From the sequence record LT960552.1: a DNA stretch of 64,000 nt, one strand, 5' to 3'. This document shows positions 2,323 through 60,161 of the stretch, piece by piece. The notes under the pieces were generated by a model that saw only the letters and a program-made list of their open reading frames with translations, had not been told where the DNA came from and searched no databases. The position numbers and the translations under genes are program-made. Numbering within the stretch: position 1 is the stretch's first letter; the number at the start of each line of letters is the position of its first letter.

Positions 2323-5300
2323 ATGTATATAGATGGATATATGGAACGAAAGAGGACAAAAGAAGTCCTTCACGTGGCTGAACGTGTTAATGGTAAACGT
2401 ATTTTGCGAGAAATTGAACCTGTTTATGAGTATTTTGTAGAATCTCCATCAGGAACATTCAAAACTATCAATGGTACTATGGCTGAAAAGTTTGAATTTA
2501 CTAGACATCATGAAATGAAGCAAACTATGGAGAAATTACCTAGTACTGCAAAGATTTATGAATCTGATTGTAATGTTACATTTAAAACTTTAGCAAAACA
2601 CTATATGGGTAAGCCATCTCCAGATTTAAATATAGTATTTTTCGATATCGAAACTGATTTTCATCCAAAATTTGGATATGCATCTCCAAGTGATCCTTTC
2701 AACCGAGTAACTGCAATTTCTTTATATCAAAGCTGGACAGGAAAGGACTATGTTCTTACAATGGCACCTTCTGATATGGATAATGTAGAAGCACAAGATA
2801 TTATCAACCGTTTGAACCACGAAACTAATGACCCTAACAGTACTGTATTGTTATATACAGATGAAGCTGAAATGTTTTCGGATTTTTTCGATTTGATTGA
2901 AGATTCTGACATTTTATCAGGATGGAATAGTGAATTTTATGATATTCCTTATATGGTTAATAGAACTCGTAAGATATTCAACGAAGCGACTTTAGCTAGA
3001 TGGTGCTTGTGGAATCGAAAGCCAAATGCTCGTGAAGCTGATATGTTTGGTAAAACTATTGTAACATATGACCTAGTTGGTCGTGTACACTTAGATTATC
3101 TTTCATTATATAAGAAACATGCTGGTCAAGTAGAACAATCTTATAAATTGGACTATATTGCTGAAAAAGTAACTGGTGAAAACAAAGTTTCATATGATGG
3201 TTCATTGGATAAGTTGTATCGAGAAGATTACTTAACGTTTTTACGTTATTCTAAACAAGATAGTATTCTATTAAAGAAAATAGATGATAAAATGGACTTC
3301 ATCAATCTACATAACCGATTGGCTCATAAAGAATGTGTACTTATTAGTACTACAATGGGTTCAGTGGCATTGATTGATACTGCTATCATTAATCTATCTC
3401 ATAAACGTGGTGAAGTAGTATTCAATAAACGAAAACTTGATGATGAAGATGAAAGTTATGATTATCAAGAATATGAAGATTATGATGATGAGGATGAAGA
3501 CGACGAACCAAAAGCAGGATCGAAAGCCGCAGGTGCATGGGTACAAGATCCAGTACTTGGATTAATTGACTTCTTGGGTTGTATTGACTTTAACTCATTA
3601 TATCCAACAGTATTACGTGCGTTAGGTATGAGTACTGAATGTATTCTTGGACAATTGCGTCAAACATATACTGATGCATATCTTGCTGAACGTATTGATG
3701 AACAACGAATGAAATTCCGTGGAAGAGGTAAATTTGAACCTAAATGGACTGAAGCATGGCATGGTTTATTTGCTAGTGTTGAATTTACAATGGTTCGTGA
3801 GAAATCAGACGATATTATCACTGTAGATTTGGAAGATGGTTCATCATTCCAAGCATCTGGTGCAGAATTATATGATATTATATTTGGTGAAGATAGTACT
3901 ATAGTATTAAGTGCTAATGGTACATTGTTTGATAAAACCAAGTATGGTGTAATTCCTGAAATTCTTACTATTTGGTATTCTGAACGTAAAGCTCAGCAAA
4001 AAATGGTAATCGATTACAAACATCTTGCAACGGATGGTTGGGAATTAGCAAGTGAAATTGTTTCTGAATTAGAAGAAGCATTAAAATTATTACAATATGG
4101 TAATAGTTTGCATAAAACGAACTTACATGAAGACGACCCTGTATATCTTATTAGATTAGCATTGGGATCTGGTGATATAAGTTCAGCAGCTAAGATCATT
4201 GCTGATAATGGTATGCGTTTTGAAGGTGGTAAGTTGTATTCACCTGAAGAAGATAAAAAGTACTGTAAAGTTCAATCATCTTTCTGGAAACAGAATCAAC
4301 AAATCCGTAAAATTTTGTTAAACTCACTATATGGTGCGTTATTGAACAAAGGTTCTAGATTCTTTGATAAGAGATTAGGTCAATCAGTAACTTTAACGGG
4401 TCGTAGTATGACTAAACACCTTGCAAGTAAGATTAATGAAGTATGTACTGAAAATTATGATCATGGTGGTGGTGTAGTTGTATATGGTGATACCGATTCT
4501 GTGTATTTTAGTGTAGCACATTATTATAAAGAGAATGATATTTCATTTGATTTATCTAAAGAAGAAGTAATTGAGCTATATCAAATGATTGGTGATACAG
4601 TAGGTTCATCATTCCCATCATTTATGGATGAAACCTTTAATACTGGTATAGATAATGGTAAAATTGTAGGGGCTGATCTGGAAATGGTAGGTTCTCGTGG
4701 TCTATTTTTGAAAAAGAAACGCTATGCTATACTAAAATATTGGGAAGATGGTTTCCGTTTAGATGTTGAAGGTAAACCTGGAAAAGTTAAAGCAATGGGT
4801 CTTGAAATTAAACGTTCAGATACACCAAAATACATTCAAAATTTCTTAGAAGACACATTAACATCATTGCTTGTTGGGTCAGAAGAAGATGTATTACGTG
4901 CGAAAGTTCGTGAATTCAAAAAGCTATTCAAAGATCGTCCTTCATATGAGAAAGGTCAACCTAAAACCGTTAAAAATTATTCTAATAAATTTAAAGAATA
5001 TGAAGAAACTGGTAAATGTAGAGTTGGACATGTTCTTGCAGCAATACAATGGAACAAATTACGTACTATATATGATGATATGACTGTTCCAGAAGCAACT
5101 GATGGAACTAAAGTTATAGTTTGTAAGTTAAAACCAAATCCATATGGTATTACATCGGTTGGCTATCCTATTGACTGTACCGAATATCTACCAGAATGGT
5201 TTTTATCATTACCATTTGATGACGATGATATGGAAAAAGCAGTACTAACTAAAAAATTAGGAAATATATTTGGTATTTTGGATATGGACTTGGCTATTGA

Positions 5301-5349
5301 TGAAAAAAGTTCAATTGAATTGAATACTGGTTTCCTAGAGTGGATATAA
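2323..5349 (+). CDS. gp43: Family B DNA polymerase (T4 gp43-like)
   Basis: Exonuclease motifs FFDIETD, GWNSEFYDIPY and YKLDYIA; polymerase motifs DFNSLYP, KILLNSLYG, YGDTDS, KKRYA and GLEIKRSD. Confidence 0.97.
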   Translation: MYIDGYMERKRTKEVLHVAERVNGKRILREIEPVYEYFVESPSGTFKTINGTMAEKFEFTRHHEMKQTMEKLPSTAKIYESDCNVTFKTLAKHYMGKPSPDLNIVFFDIETDFHPKFGYASPSDPFNRVTAISLYQSWTGKDYVLTMAPSDMDNVEAQDIINRLNHETNDPNSTVLLYTDEAEMFSDFFDLIEDSDILSGWNSEFYDIPYMVNRTRKIFNEATLARWCLWNRKPNAREADMFGKTIVTYDLVGRVHLDYLSLYKKHAGQVEQSYKLDYIAEKVTGENKVSYDGSLDKLYREDYLTFLRYSKQDSILLKKIDDKMDFINLHNRLAHKECVLISTTMGSVALIDTAIINLSHKRGEVVFNKRKLDDEDESYDYQEYEDYDDEDEDDEPKAGSKAAGAWVQDPVLGLIDFLGCIDFNSLYPTVLRALGMSTECILGQLRQTYTDAYLAERIDEQRMKFRGRGKFEPKWTEAWHGLFASVEFTMVREKSDDIITVDLEDGSSFQASGAELYDIIFGEDSTIVLSANGTLFDKTKYGVIPEILTIWYSERKAQQKMVIDYKHLATDGWELASEIVSELEEALKLLQYGNSLHKTNLHEDDPVYLIRLALGSGDISSAAKIIADNGMRFEGGKLYSPEEDKKYCKVQSSFWKQNQQIRKILLNSLYGALLNKGSRFFDKRLGQSVTLTGRSMTKHLASKINEVCTENYDHGGGVVVYGDTDSVYFSVAHYYKENDISFDLSKEEVIELYQMIGDTVGSSFPSFMDETFNTGIDNGKIVGADLEMVGSRGLFLKKKRYAILKYWEDGFRLDVEGKPGKVKAMGLEIKRSDTPKYIQNFLEDTLTSLLVGSEEDVLRAKVREFKKLFKDRPSYEKGQPKTVKNYSNKFKEYEETGKCRVGHVLAAIQWNKLRTIYDDMTVPEATDGTKVIVCKLKPNPYGITSVGYPIDCTEYLPEWFLSLPFDDDDMEKAVLTKKLGNIFGILDMDLAIDEKSSIELNTGFLEWI

Positions 5350-18361: not shown

Positions 18362-19201
18362 ATGACAGAACTTGATAAATTTTTTAATAATGTTATGGTT
18401 CTAGACACTGAAACTACTGGTGTTGATGATGAATCTGATATTATTGAGTTTAGTAGCTCATTTCCAGAAGGAAGTAATGATTCTTTTGATGGAATGATGA
18501 ATTTTACTACTAGATTCAAACCAACACATGATGTTCCACCTGATGCGTCAGCAGTACATTTTATTACAACTGAAGATTTGATAAATGAACAGACCTATTC
18601 AGTTGGACATTATGATTTTTACCCATTATTCAAACTAAAACAGTACTTTGTAGGACATAATGTGCAGTTTGATCGAAGAATGCTTCGTAAAAATCATGAA
18701 CGTATGTTTGATGACGAATTTCCAGAATTTGAGGATGACAATAGTTGGATTTGTACGTTAAAATTAGCTAAAAAATTATTTGCAGAAGACCCTGAGTTTA
18801 AAAACTTAACTTTAAGCTATTTGTGGTTCAAATTTGAGTTGTATAAAACATGTACACGTAAAATTGTACCACATAGTGCTGAAGATGATGTATATATGTG
18901 TTATAAAGTACTTTCTCATTTAGTAAATATTGCTATTGAACGTGGGTTGGTTGATACCAATAAGGAAATTGGACGACAACTGGTTAAATTATGCAATACT
19001 CCAACTTTATTCACCGTAATGACTATTGGTAAGCATAAAGGTATGTTACTTGATGAAGTACCAATGAATTATTTAAAATGGATGATTTTGAACATGGATA
19101 TTGTAAATCCAGACATGCCTAACTATGATGCTGACTTAGCATATACAGTTGAAGTCGAGATTACTCGTCGCATTGATGCTGGATTGGTGGATTTTAGTTA
19201 A
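18362..19201 (+). CDS. DEDDh 3'-5' exonuclease (ExoX/DnaQ-like) with a small C-terminal domain
   Basis: VLDTETTG, VGHNVQFD, HSAEDD; C-terminal IGKHKG...VPMNYLKW. Confidence 0.88.
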   Translation: MTELDKFFNNVMVLDTETTGVDDESDIIEFSSSFPEGSNDSFDGMMNFTTRFKPTHDVPPDASAVHFITTEDLINEQTYSVGHYDFYPLFKLKQYFVGHNVQFDRRMLRKNHERMFDDEFPEFEDDNSWICTLKLAKKLFAEDPEFKNLTLSYLWFKFELYKTCTRKIVPHSAEDDVYMCYKVLSHLVNIAIERGLVDTNKEIGRQLVKLCNTPTLFTVMTIGKHKGMLLDEVPMNYLKWMILNMDIVNPDMPNYDADLAYTVEVEITRRIDAGLVDFS

Positions 19202-19233: not shown

Positions 19234-20718
19234 ATGAGTGGAATTTGTAAGTTAATACTTCAGGATGAAGTAAATTGTAAATTTGAGGGACTTGCCCCTA
19301 ATATTAGGCAAGAAATGATTCGTAAAGTATCATTTGTATTACCTTATGCTAAATTTACTCCTGCTGGAAAAATGGGCAGATGGGACGGTAAAGTTAATTT
19401 TATGAATATAGGTGGAAGCACTTATTATCATATGTTAGATCAACTTTTACCAATTCTTGAAAAGCATAATATAATGATTGAAATTGATGATCAACGTATT
19501 ACACATGATTTTGAGTTTGAGCCAATTGATGAAAATATTTTTGATTATGTAGAATTCCCTTCTGGACATCATATGGAAGGACAAAAAATTATTTTACGTG
19601 AACATCAAGTAAATGCAGTAAATTCATGTCTTGAAAATAGACATGGACTGCTATTAGCAAGTACAAGTTCAGGTAAAACATTAATTACTGCTGCAATGTC
19701 TAAAAGTGTTGAAAAATATGGTAGAAGTATTGTAATTGTTCCTAATAAAGATTTAGTACAACAAACTTACAATGATTATGTAATGGTCGGTTTAGATGCG
19801 GGTGTATTTTATGGTGATAAAAAAGAATTAAACCATCAACATACTATCACCACATGGCAATCGTTAAACTCTTTATGGAAAAAAACAAAAAAAGGTGAAA
19901 TTGCATTAACTGAACAAGATATTAGTGATTTTATCAATGGTGTAGTTGCTGTTGTAGTTGATGAAGCACATACTAGTGCGGCAGAAGCCTTACATGCAGT
20001 ACTAGGACAAGTAATGAAAAATATTCCATTACGTTGGGGATTAACTGGTACTATTCCTAAAGATCCAGTACTTGCAGCGAAAATAAAATGTAATGTTGGT
20101 GAAATTATATATACTATATCAGCAAAAGAGTTGCAAGATAAACAAATTCTTAGTACTTGTAATGTAAATTGCATTAGATTGAAAAGCTCTTTAAAATTTG
20201 GTAATTATCAAGAAGAATTAAAATATCTAGTAACTGACAAAACTAGAATGAAGTATATTGCATCAATAATTGCAGCTATTGCAGAATCTGGTAATACCTT
20301 AGTATTAGTTGATAGATTGGAAGCTGGTGAGTTATTGTGTGAATTCTTAGGTCTACCAACATCAGAATTCGTTAGAGGTGACACTAAGAAGAAAGATCGT
20401 GAAGCATCATATGGTGAAATTCGCTGGGCTGATAATAAAATACTTATTGCAACATATGGTGTGGCTAGTACTGGTATTAGTATTAGTCGTTTATATAATG
20501 TAGTACTTTTAGAACCTGGTAAAAGTTTTGTAAGAACTATTCAGAGTATAGGCCGTGGACTTCGACGTGCAGAAGACAAAGATCACGTAGAGATTTATGA
20601 CATTTCAGGTTTCAATAAGTTTAGTGCTAAGCATTCTCGTGAAAGAATGACGTACTATAAAGAAGTACAATATCCATATCACGAAATGATTGTGGAAAAT
20701 TGGGAAAATATGGAATGA
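19234..20718 (+). CDS. uvsW: UvsW-like SF2 DNA helicase
   Basis: LREHQ, STSSGKT, VDEAH, GLTGT and QSIGRGLR. Confidence 0.93.
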   Translation: MSGICKLILQDEVNCKFEGLAPNIRQEMIRKVSFVLPYAKFTPAGKMGRWDGKVNFMNIGGSTYYHMLDQLLPILEKHNIMIEIDDQRITHDFEFEPIDENIFDYVEFPSGHHMEGQKIILREHQVNAVNSCLENRHGLLLASTSSGKTLITAAMSKSVEKYGRSIVIVPNKDLVQQTYNDYVMVGLDAGVFYGDKKELNHQHTITTWQSLNSLWKKTKKGEIALTEQDISDFINGVVAVVVDEAHTSAAEALHAVLGQVMKNIPLRWGLTGTIPKDPVLAAKIKCNVGEIIYTISAKELQDKQILSTCNVNCIRLKSSLKFGNYQEELKYLVTDKTRMKYIASIIAAIAESGNTLVLVDRLEAGELLCEFLGLPTSEFVRGDTKKKDREASYGEIRWADNKILIATYGVASTGISISRLYNVVLLEPGKSFVRTIQSIGRGLRRAEDKDHVEIYDISGFNKFSAKHSRERMTYYKEVQYPYHEMIVENWENME

Positions 20719-20739
20719 AAAGATTTTTTATGATATAAT
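20711..20739 (+). promoter_or_regulatory. TGRAAY-class extended -10 promoter
   Basis: TGGAAT-N17-TATAAT with TGA. Confidence 0.65.
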
Positions 20740-21726: not shown

Positions 21727-22574
21727 TGTTTGATTTTACTGGTTTACCTACTTCCTCTTTGGAGGAAGAAGAAGTTACTACATCTCAAATCAAGTTAGAT
21801 ATGAATCTATTGCTTGAAAAAATTGATATGGCAGATTATGGATATTACGATTCACTTAGTGATAAAGAAAAGAAACATTTTCAACCTTATATTGTGTTAC
21901 GTTGGGCGAGTTCATTAGATGATTCCGTACAAGTAACATATACTGCAAAAAAAATTGAAAATGTATTCAGTAAATGGTCTGCTGGCGGGAAAGATGCGTT
22001 GAATGAGTTAAAAGACGAATTCAACAATTCGGGTTCTGGTACATGTATATCAGTAGCAAAGTATGAACATGCTAAGTATGATTGGAGAATTAAATTTGCG
22101 GTTAAAGATATTGAAAGTGCAAAATCTATTATTGAATATATGAAAGAATTTGGAATTACTGGACATGAGATTATATCATTAATTGATAGTACTACAATTA
22201 AGAATCATCTTATCATTCTTAATGAGATGGTAAATCAGAATTTTTGGGAAATGAAAAATCATCCTGAATTAGTATATCAACTTATGTGTTCAGTATCTGA
22301 GATGATTGGACCACAAAAACGTGCTCATAATTGGATATCACATTGCAAAGGTTTAAAGAACGTTGACAAAATGATATTTGATATTATAAAATTAACCCAA
22401 CCAGAAACTATTGCTGTTCAAATGAATGAAGCTGAATATAAAATTTTATTAAATTCATACACAAAAGAAACATTTGAAGATTTAATAAAAGAATTAGGTA
22501 CTGGTGAATCAGAAATGAAAACATTATTGAAACATTTCAAAGCTGAAAAAGAAAAATATGGCAAAAACAACTAA
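21726..22574 (+). CDS. Possible clamp-loader small subunit (gp62-like) with an internal insertion
   Basis: N-part (KKHFQPYIVLRWASS) and C-part (LNEMVNQNFW...HPELVYQLM...RAHNWIS) resemble the gp62 pattern; weak. Confidence 0.4.
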   Translation: MFDFTGLPTSSLEEEEVTTSQIKLDMNLLLEKIDMADYGYYDSLSDKEKKHFQPYIVLRWASSLDDSVQVTYTAKKIENVFSKWSAGGKDALNELKDEFNNSGSGTCISVAKYEHAKYDWRIKFAVKDIESAKSIIEYMKEFGITGHEIISLIDSTTIKNHLIILNEMVNQNFWEMKNHPELVYQLMCSVSEMIGPQKRAHNWISHCKGLKNVDKMIFDIIKLTQPETIAVQMNEAEYKILLNSYTKETFEDLIKELGTGESEMKTLLKHFKAEKEKYGKNN

Positions 22575-23277
22575 AGGGGCTGCAAAAGCCCCTATTTTTA
22601 AATGTAGGTTTTGTGATAAAGAATTCAAACGTGAAAGTACATTAATAACTCATGTTTGCATTAAACGTGATCGATATAATGATCGTGAATCAAGACCAAT
22701 GCGTGAAGCATATCGTTTATATATGATGTTTATGGAAGCTCATAGACTAGCAATGAAAAAGTCAGAAGAACCACTGATGCAATTTATCAAATCTAGATAT
22801 TTTAATGATTTCTTTGATTTTGGTCAATATATTTTATCACATGATATTCTAAATAAAGAACAATTCATTAAGTACATTTTAACTAGTGGGAAACCCGTAT
22901 TTGAATGGAAATCTCATAAAGTACTTGAAGAATGGGTTATAAAATGTATTAGAGAAGAACACCCTCGTAGAGCAATAGAACGTTCTATCAATGCGTTGGT
23001 AGAATGGGGTAATGTTACAGATAACGATTGGGTTGATTTTTTTGATAATGTAAGTACTGAACGAGCAATTATGTGGTTAGAAACAGGTAAAATTTCTCCG
23101 TGGTTAATATATATTGCAGATCCAGCTAGTGGAAACAAATTGTTAAATCGGTTTGGTGATTCAGATTTAGATTATCTTGTTCGTTTTATTGACCCAACAT
23201 ACTTTAAAATACTTCAAATACGTTATAGTGATGAAGTAAATGAAATACGAAGTTTATTAACAGAGGCTGGGCTATGA
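22558..23277 (+). CDS. Hypothetical protein with an N-terminal C2HC zinc finger
   Basis: FKCRFCDKEFKRESTLITHVC. Confidence 0.7.
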   Translation: MAKTTKGAAKAPIFKCRFCDKEFKRESTLITHVCIKRDRYNDRESRPMREAYRLYMMFMEAHRLAMKKSEEPLMQFIKSRYFNDFFDFGQYILSHDILNKEQFIKYILTSGKPVFEWKSHKVLEEWVIKCIREEHPRRAIERSINALVEWGNVTDNDWVDFFDNVSTERAIMWLETGKISPWLIYIADPASGNKLLNRFGDSDLDYLVRFIDPTYFKILQIRYSDEVNEIRSLLTEAGL

Positions 23278-23624
23278 AAAGTAAAATATACAGTGAACAA
23301 GAATTAACTACAGAAGAATTAGCTAAAAAAGAAGAATTGAAAGAAGATAGCAAACAACTATCAATTTTAAGACAAGGTTCTGTAACAGAAATTACAATGA
23401 GCGGGAAAACGTTTCAGGTTTCCGACCCTAAACGAATTGAACATGCAATTATAATTTTAGAACGACATGAAGAAGTCCTATTTACGTTAAGGCAACGTAT
23501 CAAAGAACAAACTCAATCTATTAATATTTTGCTAAATGAAATTGAGAAATTGAAATCTGATGTTCAGAGATTGAAAGAGGAAAGTAATAATGGATTTGGA
23601 TCACAAGAGTACACAAACTATTAA
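23274..23624 (+). CDS. Coiled-coil hypothetical protein
   Basis: ATGA overlap with the upstream stop; heptad-rich C-terminus. Confidence 0.65.
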   Translation: MKSKIYSEQELTTEELAKKEELKEDSKQLSILRQGSVTEITMSGKTFQVSDPKRIEHAIIILERHEEVLFTLRQRIKEQTQSINILLNEIEKLKSDVQRLKEESNNGFGSQEYTNY

Positions 23625-24240
23625 TTATAGAAAGGCAAGAACTGATATTGACATTGATTTTAAAGATGGAAAATCAGTTATTGAACAACTTCCTTGTACT
23701 AGAAGTGTTGAAAAAATCACAGAAGATGGTTTGATTCCACACAATAGTGGTATACATTTTGATAATATCCCAACTGACCCAATTTCTGGATTAGCATCTA
23801 TACCATATAAAGAAGCCGAAAGGTTAGGATATCAAAAAGTTGATATTTTATCTCAATCGGCTTATGTACATGTGCGTGATAGAAATCATCTTAAAGAATT
23901 GATGAATAAAGAACCAGATTGGAATTTATTATTGGTTCCTGAAATAGTAGATCAATTGTCTCAAATTAAGAAACATATAACTTTGTTGAATATATGGAAA
24001 CCTAGTAGTATCGATGAATTAGCAATGTTTATTGCAATGATACGTCCAGGTAAACGTCAATGTCAAAGTATGAATAGTTGGGACGAAGTTCGGGCTGTTA
24101 TTTGGGAGTATGATAGTATTGGACTCGATGCAGAAGGTAAAAAGTTAAGATACTTTAAAAAACCTCATGCATTCGCATATAGTTTGATGATAGTAGTTCA
24201 GTTAAATGCATTAGTAGAATATATTATTTCCTCTTCTTAA
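23590..24240 (+). CDS. DnaE (Pol III alpha)-like catalytic palm fragment, C-half
   Basis: RTDIDIDF, HNSG, GYQKVDIL, PSSIDELAMFIAMIRPG and YFKKPHAFAY are collinear with DnaE PDFDVDF, HAGG, GLVKFDFL, ALFRPG and FNKSHSAAY. Confidence 0.85.
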   Translation: MDLDHKSTQTINYRKARTDIDIDFKDGKSVIEQLPCTRSVEKITEDGLIPHNSGIHFDNIPTDPISGLASIPYKEAERLGYQKVDILSQSAYVHVRDRNHLKELMNKEPDWNLLLVPEIVDQLSQIKKHITLLNIWKPSSIDELAMFIAMIRPGKRQCQSMNSWDEVRAVIWEYDSIGLDAEGKKLRYFKKPHAFAYSLMIVVQLNALVEYIISSS

Positions 24241-24577
24241 GAGCAATATTTCTACGTTTAATTCGTTTCGTTGGCAGATCACTTAAAGAGATTACTGGAC
24301 CTGAAATAACTTTCACATGGTCAGTATTAAAACGTTTTGTATAGTTTTCGAATTTTTCCATTTCCTCTTGCATAAAAAGGCAAATAGGAATAGTTCTATT
24401 ACTTTGCCACCACCAATTATTGGCTAAAAGTAGCAATTCTTCTTGTAAGGATTCATCCATCTCATGGAAACAGTACAAAGTTATGTATTGTTTACTTTTG
24501 ATTTTGATTATCCCATAGTAGATTACATCGTCGTGCTCTATGACCGTCACGAACGGATAAGTTTTGTGTTCATTCAT
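24224..24577 (-). CDS. Conserved hypothetical protein
   Basis: WWWQSNRTIPI motif; GGA RBS; TATAAATA upstream on the minus strand. Confidence 0.7.
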   Translation of the reverse strand: MNEHKTYPFVTVIEHDDVIYYGIIKIKSKQYITLYCFHEMDESLQEELLLLANNWWWQSNRTIPICLFMQEEMEKFENYTKRFNTDHVKVISGPVISLSDLPTKRIKRRNIALKKRK

Positions 24578-37196: not shown

Positions 37197-38321
37197 ATGT
37201 CAGTATTCAAAATTAATACAAAAAGTCACTTAGAAAAAAATATGTTTTTCGATGAATCTGTTGATATTCAACGGTTTGAATCGTTGAAATATCCAGCAAT
37301 TGAAAAACTAACAGAATCACAAAAAGGATTCTTTTGGTCACCAGATGAAGTAGATCTATCTAAAGATCGATTAGATTTTAAAACACTTACAGATCATGAG
37401 AAACATATTTTCACATCTAATCTAAAACGTCAAATTCTACTTGACTCAGTACAAGGTCGTGGTCCCAATTTAGTACTACTACCATATGCGTCACTACCTG
37501 AATTAGAAAACTTTATTGAAACATGGGCATTTTTTGAAGGTGCTATCCATAGTAAATCTTATACACATATTATTCGCAACGTATATTCAAATCCATCTGA
37601 AGTTTTTGATACAATGCTTGACATTCCAGAAATCACAAGCTGTGCCGCAGATATTTCAAAGTACTATGATGATTTAGATTTATATGGTACTTATTACAGG
37701 TTACTTGGTGAAGGTACTCATACAGTTAATGGTGAAAAAATTATCATTGATTTGTATGAATTGAAGAAGAAGTTGTGGTTATGTTTGAATTCCATCAACA
37801 TCTTAGAAGGAGTTCGTTTCTATGTGAGCTTTGTATGTTCATGGGCTTTTAGTGAAATTGAAAAGATGGAAGGTAATGGTAAGATTATCAAATTGATTTG
37901 CCGTGATGAGAACTTACACTTAGCAGCAACACAAATGATATTACGTTTGCTAAAGAAAGAAGATCCTGATTTTGCTAAAATAGCAGAAGAATGTCATGAT
38001 GAAGTACAACAAATGTTCTTAGATGCTATTCAGCAAGAAGAAGAATGGGCAGACTTCTTATTCAAGGATGGTTCTATAATTGGTCTAAACGCACCAATTC
38101 TAAAACAATATATTCGTTGGATTGGTTGTAAGAGAATGAGTGCTGTGGGTATTAAATGTCCGTACAGTATTAGTCAGAATAACCCTTTACCTTGGACGAC
38201 GAGTTGGATTAGTGGTGCAGATGTACAAGTAGCTCCACAAGAAACTGAAATTAGTTCATATATCATTGGTGGTGTAGTTAATGACATTTCTGAAGAATCT
38301 TTTAAAGGTTTAGAAATATAA
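37197..38321 (+). CDS. nrdB: Class Ia ribonucleotide reductase, beta subunit
   Basis: FFWSPDEV, LLDSVQGR, EGAIHSKSY, LEGVRFYVSF, DENLH and VAPQETEISSY. Confidence 0.97.
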   Translation: MSVFKINTKSHLEKNMFFDESVDIQRFESLKYPAIEKLTESQKGFFWSPDEVDLSKDRLDFKTLTDHEKHIFTSNLKRQILLDSVQGRGPNLVLLPYASLPELENFIETWAFFEGAIHSKSYTHIIRNVYSNPSEVFDTMLDIPEITSCAADISKYYDDLDLYGTYYRLLGEGTHTVNGEKIIIDLYELKKKLWLCLNSINILEGVRFYVSFVCSWAFSEIEKMEGNGKIIKLICRDENLHLAATQMILRLLKKEDPDFAKIAEECHDEVQQMFLDAIQQEEEWADFLFKDGSIIGLNAPILKQYIRWIGCKRMSAVGIKCPYSISQNNPLPWTTSWISGADVQVAPQETEISSYIIGGVVNDISEESFKGLEI

Positions 38322-51311: not shown

Positions 51312-51343
51312 ATAACGATGCAGAAATGCATCGTTATTTTTTT
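51312..51343 (+). terminator. Intrinsic terminator
   Basis: ATAACGATGCA-GAAA-TGCATCGTTAT followed by a T run. Confidence 0.8.
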
Positions 51344-54864: not shown

Positions 54865-54914
54865 AAGGACGCATAATGCGTCCTTTATTTTTAATCGTAT
54901 ACATATAATAAATA
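54865..54914 (+). terminator. Terminator (AAGGACGC family) followed by late promoter TAAATA
   Basis: AAGGACGCA-TAA-TGCGTCCTT; TAAATA at 54909-54914. Confidence 0.7.
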
Positions 54915-54950: not shown

Positions 54951-57311
54951 ATGGCGAATTTCGAACCCAAATGGGATTTGATAGCTGATACCAATTCGAT
55001 TAAAGAAGGACAGACTACTTATTTTAGATTACGAATTTCTAAAAGTCAACTTATTTCACCTAACGATGAATATGTACTTGATGATGACCAATATCTTGAA
55101 TTTACATTTAATATTGTAGGTGCAGGAGAAACATTAGAAGAAAGAGATTTTAACGTATCTATAGGTGAAAGTACTTCAGAATTAATTCCTATTGGAGAAG
55201 CAGGAACAGGCATCCCACACATTCAGGGAACGCACGTAGTAAAATTAAGTAGAAAAGATTTCCAATTGAGTTCAAGTATAACCTTTATTGATGCATTCTT
55301 TTTTAAAATAGAATGTCCACAAGACGGAACATGGGATGGACCAGAATCATTAACATTTAATATTGATAGCATAAATGAAATAACATTATTAGATGGACAA
55401 ATTGCCAATACAGTTCCGAGTGGAATTGTGGGAATTAGTACTCAAATTTTAAATTATAATACTGAAGATGAAGTTTGGGTTACTCCCAACTTAACAACAC
55501 ATGGTGATAATCTATATACTATTGGTGGTATTGGATATGGATCTGAAAGTAGATTATATATTCAAGCATTTGGAAGAAGTGAAACTATAAATGGGATTAC
55601 TAATATTTTTATGCCAGCATATAAAATTGAAGAAATCACTATAGCTGATATTCCCAATGAACACATAACTGGTTCAGGTACTATTTTTATACCTGTAGGA
55701 GTTGAGGAAGAATCTAATGTTTCAATTTTGGATACTATAGGTAATACAGTACAATCAGGATTAAAATTTAATGCTAACGGTCAGTTAGTACAAACATTAA
55801 TATATGATTCTGAACCAATAGATACTTATTTTAAAGCTTCAATTGTGTCTATTACTAGTTATTATAATACACCACAAGATGCATATTTCATTGGTAAAAG
55901 ATTTAGAGCATACCAAACATGGGTTTGTCCAACTGATATTACAGATTTTTATGGTGCAGTAAAGCCAAATCATATGTATCAACTTAAAGATACTAAAGTA
56001 TATCCTTATGTAGTAAAAGAAATTATTATTGAAGGAAGTACTAAAATATTATTTGAGGAAGATAAGTGGTATGATTTGGGATTATATAATGAATCATTAG
56101 GTACTGGTATTATTGGTTCAGAAAGAATGTTTCGTGTTGTTGTAAATGATAATACTGGTACAGATATTTCTTTTGAAACTGATACAAATCTAGGTGAAAT
56201 TCATGTTGGTGAATATTTTGGACATTCAGTATATCCTAAAATAATCGCTAGTGGTTCAGATTTAATAACATACCACATTGATTCAACTACTTCACCAAAT
56301 GATATTACAAAATATGGATTAGATTTAACAGCAGATGGAATTGTCATTGGTGAAGCATACGCATTAAGTACTGATTTTACTGCTAATGATGATATACCAT
56401 TACAGTTTGATGTAGTCGCTACTAGTAAACTTGGTAAATCATTAACAAAAAGATTTAGATTAAGAATTATTAGAGGATTAGGACAAAACTATTTACATGC
56501 AGATGTGTACCCATCGTTGACATTAGAACGTTCTTGGTTTAAAATGATAAGTTCAACTACATTTAGTAGAGCATTTTATTATAGGGCATCTGACCCACGA
56601 TATGGAGTAAAAACTATACCTCGTATTTTGTTAAAAGAGAACTTCGTTGATCCAACTAAAAATTGGGAAGGGATTAAACAAACGATTCTCAATCTCAGGG
56701 CTGGAATAGTTGATACAGTTCATGGTTCACCAACACCAGATGGTTCATTTAGATTAGTACTAGGAAATTATAAAATACGTTCAGCTCTTGACAATCAAGG
56801 AAATGTGTTGTATGATGTACTGTACAGAGAGCTACATGAAGAAGGTGTACAAGTTAATTTAAGTTTAAATCCATTGAAATATACTGATTATTCTACCTCT
56901 ATAATTTCTGAGATTTTTGGATTAAGACAAAATATTTTTAATATTATAGGTGAAGATACCGTAAACTTATTAACAGATCCAACTGATTTAAATAATCGTG
57001 GTATTGTCGTTGAACCAATCAATGGAATATCTGTCGAAATGTTAGATACAGTTCCTCGTTACATGAATCATCCATATATCGAAGATAACATTAAACCTAT
57101 GTATTTCCCATGTATACCAGTTGCATACTTGCAACCAGGGCAAGGTGAAATATTGTTTAATACGATGGTACAAAATAATGAACATGGTACATTGCTCAAT
57201 ACTGAATTTGAAGTATCTGGTGTTGAATTTAAATACTATACTGAAAGTACTGACAAATATGTTCAAGAAAACTTTACGGCATCATTAAAAGTGCCTAATC
57301 TATTTCAATAA
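54951..57311 (+). CDS. Large virion structural protein (baseplate/wedge-like)
   Basis: 786 aa, beta-rich, late promoter, GGAG RBS. Confidence 0.55.
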   Translation: MANFEPKWDLIADTNSIKEGQTTYFRLRISKSQLISPNDEYVLDDDQYLEFTFNIVGAGETLEERDFNVSIGESTSELIPIGEAGTGIPHIQGTHVVKLSRKDFQLSSSITFIDAFFFKIECPQDGTWDGPESLTFNIDSINEITLLDGQIANTVPSGIVGISTQILNYNTEDEVWVTPNLTTHGDNLYTIGGIGYGSESRLYIQAFGRSETINGITNIFMPAYKIEEITIADIPNEHITGSGTIFIPVGVEEESNVSILDTIGNTVQSGLKFNANGQLVQTLIYDSEPIDTYFKASIVSITSYYNTPQDAYFIGKRFRAYQTWVCPTDITDFYGAVKPNHMYQLKDTKVYPYVVKEIIIEGSTKILFEEDKWYDLGLYNESLGTGIIGSERMFRVVVNDNTGTDISFETDTNLGEIHVGEYFGHSVYPKIIASGSDLITYHIDSTTSPNDITKYGLDLTADGIVIGEAYALSTDFTANDDIPLQFDVVATSKLGKSLTKRFRLRIIRGLGQNYLHADVYPSLTLERSWFKMISSTTFSRAFYYRASDPRYGVKTIPRILLKENFVDPTKNWEGIKQTILNLRAGIVDTVHGSPTPDGSFRLVLGNYKIRSALDNQGNVLYDVLYRELHEEGVQVNLSLNPLKYTDYSTSIISEIFGLRQNIFNIIGEDTVNLLTDPTDLNNRGIVVEPINGISVEMLDTVPRYMNHPYIEDNIKPMYFPCIPVAYLQPGQGEILFNTMVQNNEHGTLLNTEFEVSGVEFKYYTESTDKYVQENFTASLKVPNLFQ

Positions 57312-57320
57312 GGAAAATTT

Positions 57321-57623
57321 ATGTTTCATCCATTTTTCGACCCATCATCTTTAAGTGATAAAGAACTATATGATAAAATAACTGAAGTTTCTGTTAGAAT
57401 CTCTGCTGCTAGAACATCAGGGATTCAATATGAAATTATACAATCAATGTACACATTAATTCACGCATGTGAAGAAGAGATTAGAACTAGGCAAGCTCAC
57501 AAAGATCTTGAGAGTGCTTCTAAGGAAGATAATTGTGTATTTGATTCAGATAGTTATTTAAATGACAAAGATGATAAAAATAATGAAAATACAAAAAAAC
57601 AGAACTATAAGCGAGGATGGTGA
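57321..57623 (+). CDS. Hypothetical protein
   Basis: AAGGA RBS; MFHPF start. Confidence 0.65.
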   Translation: MFHPFFDPSSLSDKELYDKITEVSVRISAARTSGIQYEIIQSMYTLIHACEEEIRTRQAHKDLESASKEDNCVFDSDSYLNDKDDKNNENTKKQNYKRGW

Positions 57624-58101
57624 TGTTCGTTTAGATCTGAATGCTGTTGTTTATGCTATAAACTGCGGCACAGACATTACTTATATCCAGCTTAATGAGC
57701 AAGATGAAGTTGAACGATTGAAGTTCAATGATAATTGTAAAAAATTTGGACTTACTGAACGTATGCTAGATTATAAAATAGAACATGATAAAAATCATGA
57801 ACTATGGAGATATGATCCAGTATATGATAAAATCAACTTAGAAGATTATTTCCTTTCTTTATGTAGTACTGATGTTGAACGTGATCGAGTACTATATGAA
57901 TTAGGATTGTATGAAAATTATAATATGACCAAACTATTAAGATGTATGATATGGTTGGTAGATTATCTTGACGAACATAATATTTTTTGGGGATTAGGTC
58001 GTGGAAGTTCAGTAAGCAGCTTTTGTTTGTATTTGATTGGATTACATTTGGTTGATTCAGTGAAATACGAATTAGATGTGAACGAATTTTTGAAATGGTA
58101 A
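57562..58101 (+). CDS. DnaE (Pol III alpha)-like fragment, N-half
   Basis: DRVLYEL...NIFWGLGRGSSVSSFCLYLIGLHLVDSVKYELDVNEFLK aligns with DnaE ERLETEL...[39 protein letters not shown]; the true start may be 57571 or 57583. Confidence 0.85.
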   Translation: MTKMIKIMKIQKNRTISEDGDVRLDLNAVVYAINCGTDITYIQLNEQDEVERLKFNDNCKKFGLTERMLDYKIEHDKNHELWRYDPVYDKINLEDYFLSLCSTDVERDRVLYELGLYENYNMTKLLRCMIWLVDYLDEHNIFWGLGRGSSVSSFCLYLIGLHLVDSVKYELDVNEFLKW

Positions 58102-58119
58102 AAAAAATTATGGTATAAT
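58091..58119 (+). promoter_or_regulatory. TGRAAY-class extended -10 promoter
   Basis: TGAAAT-N17-TATAAT with TGG. Confidence 0.7.
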
Positions 58120-58150: not shown

Positions 58151-58531
58151 ATGAAGAAACATACTAGCTATCGCGGTCAAAAAATCGATATGGAAATGTT
58201 GAAATTTCAGCATCAATATAGTGTAGCCGTTGGTAACGCAAACATGAATGCACGTGGTGACATTATTGGTCGCGGCGGCACCGTTGTTAAAAAGCGTGAA
58301 GATTTATTGGCAGAACGTGAACGTGAATTACAAAAACCTGATATCAGTCCAGAACATCAAAGCCACTCAATTGCTCCACAAATGGGCGATCCTATGTCTT
58401 TTGCAGATAATGGATTTGATGATACACAGTTTGAAAGTACTCCAACAGGTGATTATATTGAAGAACCAGTTGAAAAGAAAGTACCAGTAAAACGTGCAAA
58501 AACTAAAGACGCTGATACAGACCAAGAATAA
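58151..58531 (+). CDS. Conserved hypothetical protein
   Basis: RGQKIDM...AVGNANMNARGDIIGRGG. Confidence 0.7.
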   Translation: MKKHTSYRGQKIDMEMLKFQHQYSVAVGNANMNARGDIIGRGGTVVKKREDLLAERERELQKPDISPEHQSHSIAPQMGDPMSFADNGFDDTQFESTPTGDYIEEPVEKKVPVKRAKTKDADTDQE

Positions 58532-58541
58532 GGAAATTAAC

Positions 58542-58862
58542 ATGGAGTCAAAAGTACTTAATGCCTGTAAAGGTAAGGTTTTAGTATCTAACTTAGATTC
58601 AGGTGAACAAGTTTTAAAATCAGGAATTGTCCTTAGAGATGATGATGGTAAAGTACGTGGTGTACATAGTCGATGGGCTAAAGTATATTCAGTAGGTGAA
58701 AATGTTACCGATATCGAAGCTGGTGAATGGATCTTAGTATCTCATGGTAGATGGTCAAGAACTATCACAGTCGAAGGTATCTCATTAAATTTAGTAGATT
58801 ATCCTAAAGGTGTACTTGCAGCATGTAAGGAACGTCCAGATTTTCTTGGATTAGGATATTAA
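58542..58862 (+). CDS. Second, divergent GroES-like co-chaperonin
   Basis: GKVLV...KSGIVL...AKVYSVG...IEAGEWILV; AAGGA RBS before ATG 58542. Confidence 0.7.
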   Translation: MESKVLNACKGKVLVSNLDSGEQVLKSGIVLRDDDGKVRGVHSRWAKVYSVGENVTDIEAGEWILVSHGRWSRTITVEGISLNLVDYPKGVLAACKERPDFLGLGY

Positions 58863-58867
58863 CAAAA

Positions 58868-58897
58868 ATGCTCTGCATATGCAGGGCATTATTTTTT
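58868..58897 (+). terminator. Intrinsic terminator
   Basis: ATGCTCTGCA-TA-TGCAGGGCAT followed by TATTTTTT. Confidence 0.65.
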
Positions 58898-58908
58898 ATG
58901 GGTATAAT

Positions 58909-59208
58909 ATGAGTATAACAATAGATAATAAATTTAATTTTTATGATGTTAAAATAATTTCTTCCAATAAATCTGGTAAATTTTATTTTGAAGTAGTTAA
59001 AAACAGATCTAAAGTGTATGAAGTATCTGATGATTTATTTAAAACTATGCTGGTTTCAGCGTCTATGCAACAAAATAATAAATCGATTGGAGCAAGTACA
59101 AGTACACGTGCAAATTCATTTGAATACTTATTTGATCAATTAGAAATGACCGAAGATATTTTTACAGCACTATTATATCCAGAATGGATAAACGAAAACA
59201 AGGAATAA
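58909..59208 (+). CDS. Hypothetical protein (start uncertain)
   Basis: ORF fills the gap; no clear RBS. Confidence 0.5.
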   Translation: MSITIDNKFNFYDVKIISSNKSGKFYFEVVKNRSKVYEVSDDLFKTMLVSASMQQNNKSIGASTSTRANSFEYLFDQLEMTEDIFTALLYPEWINENKE

Positions 59209-59210
59209 TT

Positions 59211-60161
59211 ATGACAAGTCTATGGACCGAAAAGTACCGACCACAAAATGTTGATGAATATGTATTCAAAAATCCAGCGTTTAAATTAAAGATGGAAGAA
59301 TGGATCAGTACTGGTCAAGTCCCACATATTGGATTTTTTGGACCAGCAGGGACTGGTAAAACTTCTGCCATTAAAGTACTAATTAATGGTTTAATACAAA
59401 ATGGATTTGTTGATTCATTTGATGTTACCATTTTAAATATGTCAGATGAAGGTATTGATGCAGTACGTGAAATCGAAAATGCTGCTAGATTATCTACCAT
59501 TGGTGATTATAGAATCTTCGTACTAGAAGAAATGGAACAAATGGGCTTTAAAGCTCAAGGTTCATTAAAACGTATTATGGAAGACTATCATGAGAATGCT
59601 AGATTTATTCTTACATCAAATGAACCACACAAAATTTTAAAACCAATCATATCTCGTGTACAAACCATTAACATTGAAAAACATGATCAAGATGAATTCA
59701 CTACTAGAATTATTGAAATCCTAATCAATGAAGGTGTAGAGCTAGAAACTGAAGAAAGTTTAGATTTGGTTAATAAGTATATTAAATGTACTTTCCCTGA
59801 TTTCAGAAAAACATTAAACACGTTGCAAAGTTCAGTAGTTGGTGGTAAATTAGTAAAATTAGAAGATTCAGTTGATAGTACTGCAAGTTATAGAGGGGCA
59901 ATTGTAGATGCATTAAAAGCAGGGAATATTAGACAAATGCGTGAACTTATTGTTCAAAATATTCCAGAAGATGAAATTGATGGATTCTTTACATTTTTAT
60001 ATCAAAATGTTGATATGTTCACCAATGACAGTATTAAAGAAATGAAAATAAAAATCAAAATTCGTGATGCTGTAGTAAAACAAGCAAGTGTATCTGATAG
60101 AGAAATGAATTTATCTGCACTTTTATGTGAAGTTGATCTTATTTGTAATGATCAAATGTAA
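59211..60161 (+). CDS. gp44: Clamp-loader AAA+ subunit (T4 gp44/RFC-like)
   Basis: LWTEKYRP, GPAGTGKT, FILTSN, ISRV and PDFRKTLN. Confidence 0.92.
   Translation: MTSLWTEKYRPQNVDEYVFKNPAFKLKMEEWISTGQVPHIGFFGPAGTGKTSAIKVLINGLIQNGFVDSFDVTILNMSDEGIDAVREIENAARLSTIGDYRIFVLEEMEQMGFKAQGSLKRIMEDYHENARFILTSNEPHKILKPIISRVQTINIEKHDQDEFTTRIIEILINEGVELETEESLDLVNKYIKCTFPDFRKTLNTLQSSVVGGKLVKLEDSVDSTASYRGAIVDALKAGNIRQMRELIVQNIPEDEIDGFFTFLYQNVDMFTNDSIKEMKIKIKIRDAVVKQASVSDREMNLSALLCEVDLICNDQM

Follow-up and report, generated by a model that had tools for sequence, protein, structure and literature searches.

The phage and its replication genes

The window analysed here is the whole 64,000-nucleotide stretch of DNA taken from Yersinia phage fHe-Yen9-03 (LT960552.1), a Rak2-like jumbo myophage of the genus Eneladusvirus; its coordinates are those of LT960552.1 minus 186000. 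It encodes a 1008-aa family B DNA polymerase of the T4 replicase type (2323..5349, +; PF03104, E=5e-21; PF00136, E=7e-21), whose homologue in phage CBB was entered as gp43-like (CBB genome paper, PMC5259590), and a stand-alone DnaQ-like 3'-5' exonuclease (18362..19201, +). In RefSeq NC_042116 the family B polymerase (g256) is labelled a 'hypothetical protein', and the name 'DNA polymerase' is given to two small Pol III pieces, referred to below as the N-half and the C-half. Over a 2-kb stretch around the N-half gene, phage fHe-Yen9-04 is 99.8% identical to fHe-Yen9-03, and phages of Erwinia, Serratia, Cronobacter and Pectobacterium, along with other Rak2-like jumbo phages, share 66-86% identity.

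The ribonucleotide reductase small-subunit gene (window 37197-38321) is a single intact ORF of 374 aa in fHe-Yen9-03, and the same gene in the sister phage fHe-Yen9-04 is annotated in two pieces, with one interrupting insertion that carries an extra ORF.

The two polymerase genes

The N-half gene of the split minimal Pol III alpha (57583..58101, +) encodes 172 aa and matches phrog_11127, 'DNA polymerase' (E=4.6e-84). The maximal ORF reported in a preliminary description of this DNA (57562..58101, +; 179 aa) is present with the C-terminal string given there. The 172-aa product starting at 57583 is most likely the real one, since relatives all begin at the corresponding Met and the depositors' ribosome-binding site lies just 5' of it. 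The gene overlaps the preceding ORF (57321..57623) by 41 nt (57583-57623), in the +1 frame relative to that ORF.

The C-terminal stretch of the N-half had been proposed to correspond to DnaE, and Pfam bears this out. The last 73 residues (106-178 in the 179-aa numbering; 57877..58095, +) match positions 23-95 of the 260 in PF07733, the palm sub-domain bearing the nucleotide-triphosphate-binding loop, at E=1.4e-7 and with 31.9 bits against a gathering cut-off of 23.9. A profile search placing the GRGS segment in an unrelated family had been named as a possible refutation; the segment falls in Pol III alpha instead. As a single sequence, the N-half aligns to Taq Pol III alpha 385-454, a range that spans the GRGS loop. 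The loop itself (G139-S142 of the 172-aa protein; 57997..58008, +) and the adjoining S143 are invariant in 25/25 aligned relatives, down to 33% identity.

The C-half gene (23590..24240, +) lies 33 kb upstream on the same strand and encodes a 216-aa protein with a catalytic palm sheet and trimmed fingers, matching phrog_11778, 'DNA polymerase' (E=1e-105). This is the partner beginning RKARTDID that the preliminary description had pointed to; the basic residues ahead of the Asp cluster, to which that account had also drawn attention, are not conserved in distant relatives. The C-half overlaps the preceding ORF by 35 nt (23590-23624), in the +1 frame, and a convergent downstream gene by 17 nt. 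The small ORFs overlapped by the starts of the C-half and N-half occur in 1/80 and 5/80 relatives, respectively, and this rarity makes the overlaps look lineage-specific.

The C-half is invariant across 29/29 relatives at D19, D21, D23, H51, G54, K83, D85, R152, P153, K155, H193 and Y197. The Asp cluster D19-D23 (23644..23658, +) contains palm metal-binding residues, with D19, D21 and D23 aligning to D415/D417/D419 of DnaE1 (5lew_A), and the third palm acidic residue lies in K83-x-D85 (23836..23844, +), which aligns to K579/D581 of the same chain; the local E-values of both alignments are weak. In an AlphaFold model these acidic residues fall on predicted strands E19-24 and E83-88. Residues ~98-216 form a helical, fingers-like region (23881..24237, +) that holds the invariant R152, P153, K155, H193 and Y197.

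Single-sequence searches detect the C-half poorly. A PDB search with the window protein returns chance matches only, and a family profile is required; the protein has no PF07733 match and reaches no Pfam cut-off by itself. Its match to the fingers domain PF17657, at E=0.11, is below the cut-off, and the same domain is matched at E<=0.01 by 10/29 relatives, with a best value of 3.6e-6. The profile mapping onto DnaE shows only part of the domain. Structural comparison is consistent for both proteins. The AlphaFold models have pLDDT values of 82.9 (N-half) and 92.4 (C-half), and Foldseek searches of the PDB return only C-family polymerases (Pol III alpha or PolC) among the top 7 matches of the N-half and the top 16 of the C-half, with best-match probabilities of 0.94-0.99, E-values of 0.009-0.05 and TM-scores (TMq) of 0.34-0.47 that denote a modest match.

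Where the halves meet on DnaE

The break was located with family alignments of 25 N-half and 29 C-half relatives, each profile being mapped separately onto solved DnaE chains. Positions 94-164 of the N-half profile (166 positions) correspond to residues 322-392 of Escherichia coli Pol III alpha and 336-406 of Mycobacterium tuberculosis DnaE1. The C-half profile is colinear on DnaE1, with positions 3-15 at 412-424, 58-150 at 568-673 and 164-178 at 773-787. The E-values of these profile matches to PDB sequences are weak (0.03-0.1), and every credible match is a DnaE. Once the unaligned end positions are added, the N-half ends at ~408 of DnaE1 and the C-half family starts at ~410. The earlier proposal that one half ends where the other begins is thus supported by the separate mappings, and the halves appear to abut within about two residues, with neither overlap nor loss. 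The break falls in the short segment that joins the helix following the GRGS loop to the strand bearing the catalytic Asp pair. In Eneladusvirus, the C-half carries ~14 extra N-terminal residues before the break, which are absent from distant relatives.

The phage pair is strongly reduced relative to the bacterial enzyme. DnaE1 has 144 residues separating the Asp pair from the third Asp; the corresponding interval of the phage family profile measures ~43 positions, and a thumb therefore appears to be lacking. The fingers are shortened to ~130 residues. Pfam searches and the protein lengths (172 and 216 aa) reveal no PHP, clamp-binding, OB or tau-binding domain in either half.

Conserved neighbourhoods of the two genes

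Each half sits in a recurring gene neighbourhood. Downstream of the N-half, the window encodes a 126-aa protein, a GroES-like co-chaperonin, a small ORF and an RFC/gp44-type clamp loader (58151..60161, +); among 80 loci, the 126-aa protein is found in 73, the GroES-like protein in 74 and the clamp loader in 62. The median gap between the N-half stop and the gene for the 126-aa protein is 4 nt in relatives, compared with a 50-nt gap holding a promoter in the window. The 126-aa protein (58151-58531) has no match in a PDB sequence search. Upstream of the N-half, conservation is low: the 786-aa structural gene found there in the window is present in only 9/80 loci and topoisomerase genes in 3-5/80.

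The C-half has neighbours of its own. Directly upstream, in 76/80 loci, is a gene for a 239-aa protein with an N-terminal C2H2 zinc finger (22558..23277, +), for which a PDB sequence search yields the C2H2 zinc finger only. Adjoining the 3' end, in 78/80 loci and always on the opposite strand, is a convergent 117-aa gene (24224..24577, -); its 17-nt overlap with the C-half 3' end is the same in the window and in phage PA5oct. From this arrangement, either the zinc-finger protein or the convergent 117-aa protein could be an additional partner of the mini-polymerase. UvsW (56/80 loci), primase (57/80) and DnaB (44/80) also recur around the C-half.

The annotated PA5oct genome has both neighbourhoods likewise. 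The published description of the split (Iyer et al., 2021; PMC7824862) does not seem to cover this neighbourhood pattern.

Function of the split enzyme

The most probable reading, to which we assign a probability of about 0.72, is that the two proteins are pieces of a minimal C-family (Pol III alpha/DnaE-type) nucleotidyltransferase core that serves as a putative accessory polymerase. In DnaE, the GRGS loop holds the triphosphate of the incoming nucleotide. The N-half would supply the helical palm sub-domain with this loop, and the C-half would supply the beta-sheet with the three metal-binding acidic residues together with a shortened fingers domain. The two proteins would associate non-covalently, building one active site. 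The resulting enzyme would act as a putative accessory DNA polymerase beside the family B replicase, as proposed by Iyer et al. (2021). This reading draws on homology, break position, conservation, purifying selection, gene separation, neighbourhoods and the presence of a family B replicase, each of them observed. Some points weigh against it. A processive polymerase would not normally lack a thumb and clamp-binding elements, as this pair appears to, the PDB matches are marginal, the window's C-half reaches no Pfam cut-off alone, and the halves seem to belong to different promoter classes in fHe-Yen9-03.

Reading the neighbourhoods together with the split suggests a more specific and decidedly speculative scheme, which we regard as improbable though worth stating. 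The halves might be tied to two replisome modules that are kept apart across the clade, so that the polymerase would be active only where the modules meet at the fork, and the always-adjacent small proteins might partly be subunits that replace the thumb or clamp-binding parts.

In an alternative that we judge unlikely, templated polymerisation would be the task neither of the pair nor of either protein by itself. The proteins might form another nucleotidyltransferase of the Pol-beta fold, engaged in repair tailing or in making a nucleotide-derived product, or they might act in separate complexes, the N-half with the clamp loader and the C-half with the primase-helicase. The missing thumb, clamp-binding and OB domains would fit such a role, as would the complete family B replicase and separate DnaQ-like exonuclease that the phage already has, and the distinct conserved neighbourhood of each half agrees with separate complexes. 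However, the residues R152, P153, K155, H193 and Y197, which are typical of DnaE-type fingers, are kept and invariant. The halves also co-occur strictly, with near-identical counts per host genus among isolated phages, and neither has a full Pol-beta-type active site alone.

Transcription units and timing

A promoter class built from TGRAAY, a spacer of fixed length and an extended -10 stands ahead of many replication genes in the window. There are 14 matches on the + strand against 2.2 expected by shuffling; 12 of the 14, between 1878 and 58119, have identical geometry and mostly lie ~30 nt ahead of a gene start. The depositors' annotation marks the same sites, and the class was described before replication genes in the CBB genome paper (PMC5259590). 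A scan with the sigma-70 consensus shows no enrichment over shuffles. The motif ATAAATA, described in phages CBB and GAP32 (PMC5259590), is rarer on the + strand than chance would give: 12 copies occur, compared with ~42 in shuffled sequence. Of these 12 copies, 8 lie <=70 nt upstream of a gene start.

These motifs agree with the earlier statement that the halves are in different transcription units, as judged from promoter and terminator sequences. The unit ending with the C-half would be headed by a TGRAAY-type -35 and extended -10 (20711..20739, +), annotated by the depositors as -35/-10. The apparent N-half unit is bounded upstream by a strong hairpin resembling an intrinsic terminator after the topoisomerase genes (54865..54885, +). 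It continues with a late-promoter-like ATAAATA motif (54908..54914, +), 37 nt ahead of the first gene of the unit, which encodes the 786-aa virion structural protein (54951..57311, +). The label 'baseplate-like' previously applied to this gene does not stand, as its product matches only a 'virion structural protein' PHROG. No TGRAAY-type promoter occurs between the ATAAATA motif or structural gene and the N-half; the next one overlies the last N-half codons (58091..58119, +) and opens the following unit.

A possible attenuator or partial terminator lies within the C-half operon: at 22575-22593, in the opening codons of the zinc-finger gene, a GC-rich hairpin with a perfect 7-bp stem precedes a T-run.

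The arrangement of the units led to the suggestion that timing gates assembly: the C-half would be made with the middle (replication) genes, and the N-half only with late structural genes, so that the enzyme would form late only. The TGRAAY-type promoter at 20711 ahead of the C-half, and the terminator, ATAAATA motif and virion structural gene ahead of the N-half, would fit. We consider this scenario unlikely. Only 9/80 loci have the structural gene ahead of the N-half, compared with 62-74/80 for the downstream clamp-loader cluster, and it is replication genes that are conserved beside both halves. Since the late structural gene is a lineage-specific neighbour of the N-half, the timing gate is speculation without comparative support. 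Transcripts from the topoisomerase promoter at 51343 might also run through the terminator, and the PA5oct transcriptome paper found middle and late regions to be hardly separated. The text of that paper gives no gene-level expression for the PA5oct homologues, gp196 and gp264.

Age and maintenance of the split

The two-gene form is widespread. An exhaustive profile search with the N-half against representatives at 50% identity returns 2639 proteins at E<=0.001 and 483 clusters at E<=1e-30; the best 150 of these 483 clusters all comprise proteins of 122-196 aa that end at the profile end. In IMG/VR loci, the N-half stop follows the profile end with no intervening residue in 68/80 and after 2-9 residues in 12/80. 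On the other side of the break, 80 C-half loci have <=51 residues of open frame ahead of the match, with a median of 8. The partner half, or a fusion, occurs within 10 kb at none of 160 metagenomic viral loci (80 N-half and 80 C-half).

The distance between the halves varies among phages. It is 31-34 kb in Rak2-like phages, 44 kb in PA5oct-like phages and 15 kb in XacN1 and RAS14, and reaches 116 kb in SCTP-2, 182 kb in Atu_ph07 and 224 kb in Phosso. A C-half relative is also present in an Alishewanella phage of 141.6 kb, so the family may extend beyond genomes of >200 kb. In Escherichia phage CMSTMSU, the C-half match is returned as three pieces; OQ508957.1 and MH494197.1 are the records of these two phages.

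Both halves are under strong constraint, with dN/dS against relatives of 0.04-0.06, a value that is approximate because dS is near saturation. Together, selection, the conserved ends, and the separation and co-occurrence of the genes indicate that the split is old, universal in the clade and maintained by selection. It did not happen within fHe-Yen9-03 but is ancestral to a large clade of T4-related phages, most of them jumbo phages.

The view that the pair arose by fission and not by decay, put forward in the preliminary description, is borne out by these data. Decaying remnants of a captured host dnaE might be suspected because the N-half spans only 73/260 PF07733 positions, and the CBB genome paper (PMC5259590) called it a 'truncated' Pol III alpha, of 172 aa compared with ~1120 aa in its bacterial matches. 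The sequence evidence contradicts this idea, which we reject as very improbable: dN/dS is low, no catalytic or GRGS residue varies, hundreds of clusters and the 160 loci retain the same ends, with no locus having the halves fused or adjacent, and DnaE-like remnants are absent from the flanks of both genes in the window. Each half is single-copy in the window.

Joining of the halves by a split intein, for which two-gene dnaE with trans-splicing is a precedent, is rejected as scarcely credible, since an N-half stop 0-9 residues past the DnaE-homologous region and a C-half family start 1-5 profile positions before the Asp cluster leave no room for intein halves, and neither protein matches an intein or Hint family in Pfam at E<=1.

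Relation to known systems and significance

The split polymerase is already known from the literature, from PHROGs v4, in which both families are named 'DNA polymerase', and from RefSeq NC_042116, in which both genes are. Iyer, Anantharaman, Krishnan, Burroughs and Aravind described the split minimal Pol III alpha of group 2.2 jumbo phages (Viruses 13:63, 2021; PMC7824862). The fHe-Yen9-03 pair belongs to this system as they define it and shows no difference in kind. In both cases, genes far apart encode two stand-alone proteins, one the N-terminal part that binds NTP and the other the C-terminal part that binds Mg and template; other Pol III domains are absent, and a family B polymerase is encoded as well. 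To that description the present analysis adds where the break lies to the residue, how many loci are without fusion or adjacency, the dN/dS estimates and the conserved neighbourhood of each half. No experimental study of the split enzyme was found among the papers searched.

Comparison with other polymerases sets the phage pair apart. Bacterial DnaE and PolC, the only sequence and fold matches, share the GRGS loop, the Asp triad and the fingers motifs. They are single chains of 1100-1400 residues, whereas the phage enzyme has ~390 in two, and their PHP, thumb, clamp-binding and OB/tau-binding parts are absent from the phage pair. In the cyanobacterial split-intein system, dnaE is present as two unlinked genes. 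The phage proteins differ in lacking intein halves and in being broken just before the catalytic Asp pair, and their product would stay as two chains. Family B polymerases, also of the replicative type, work as two polypeptides in some T4-related phages and some archaea, and the pieces are usually encoded side by side. These belong to another polymerase family, and the phage halves, in contrast, are never within 10 kb of each other in the 160 loci.

Iyer et al. (2021; PMC7824862) put the minimal Pol III alpha forward as a model for the ancestral enzyme. At ~390 residues in two chains, its core would be the smallest known version of the bacterial replicase fold, and it occurs in phages that already own a eukaryote-like family B replicase.
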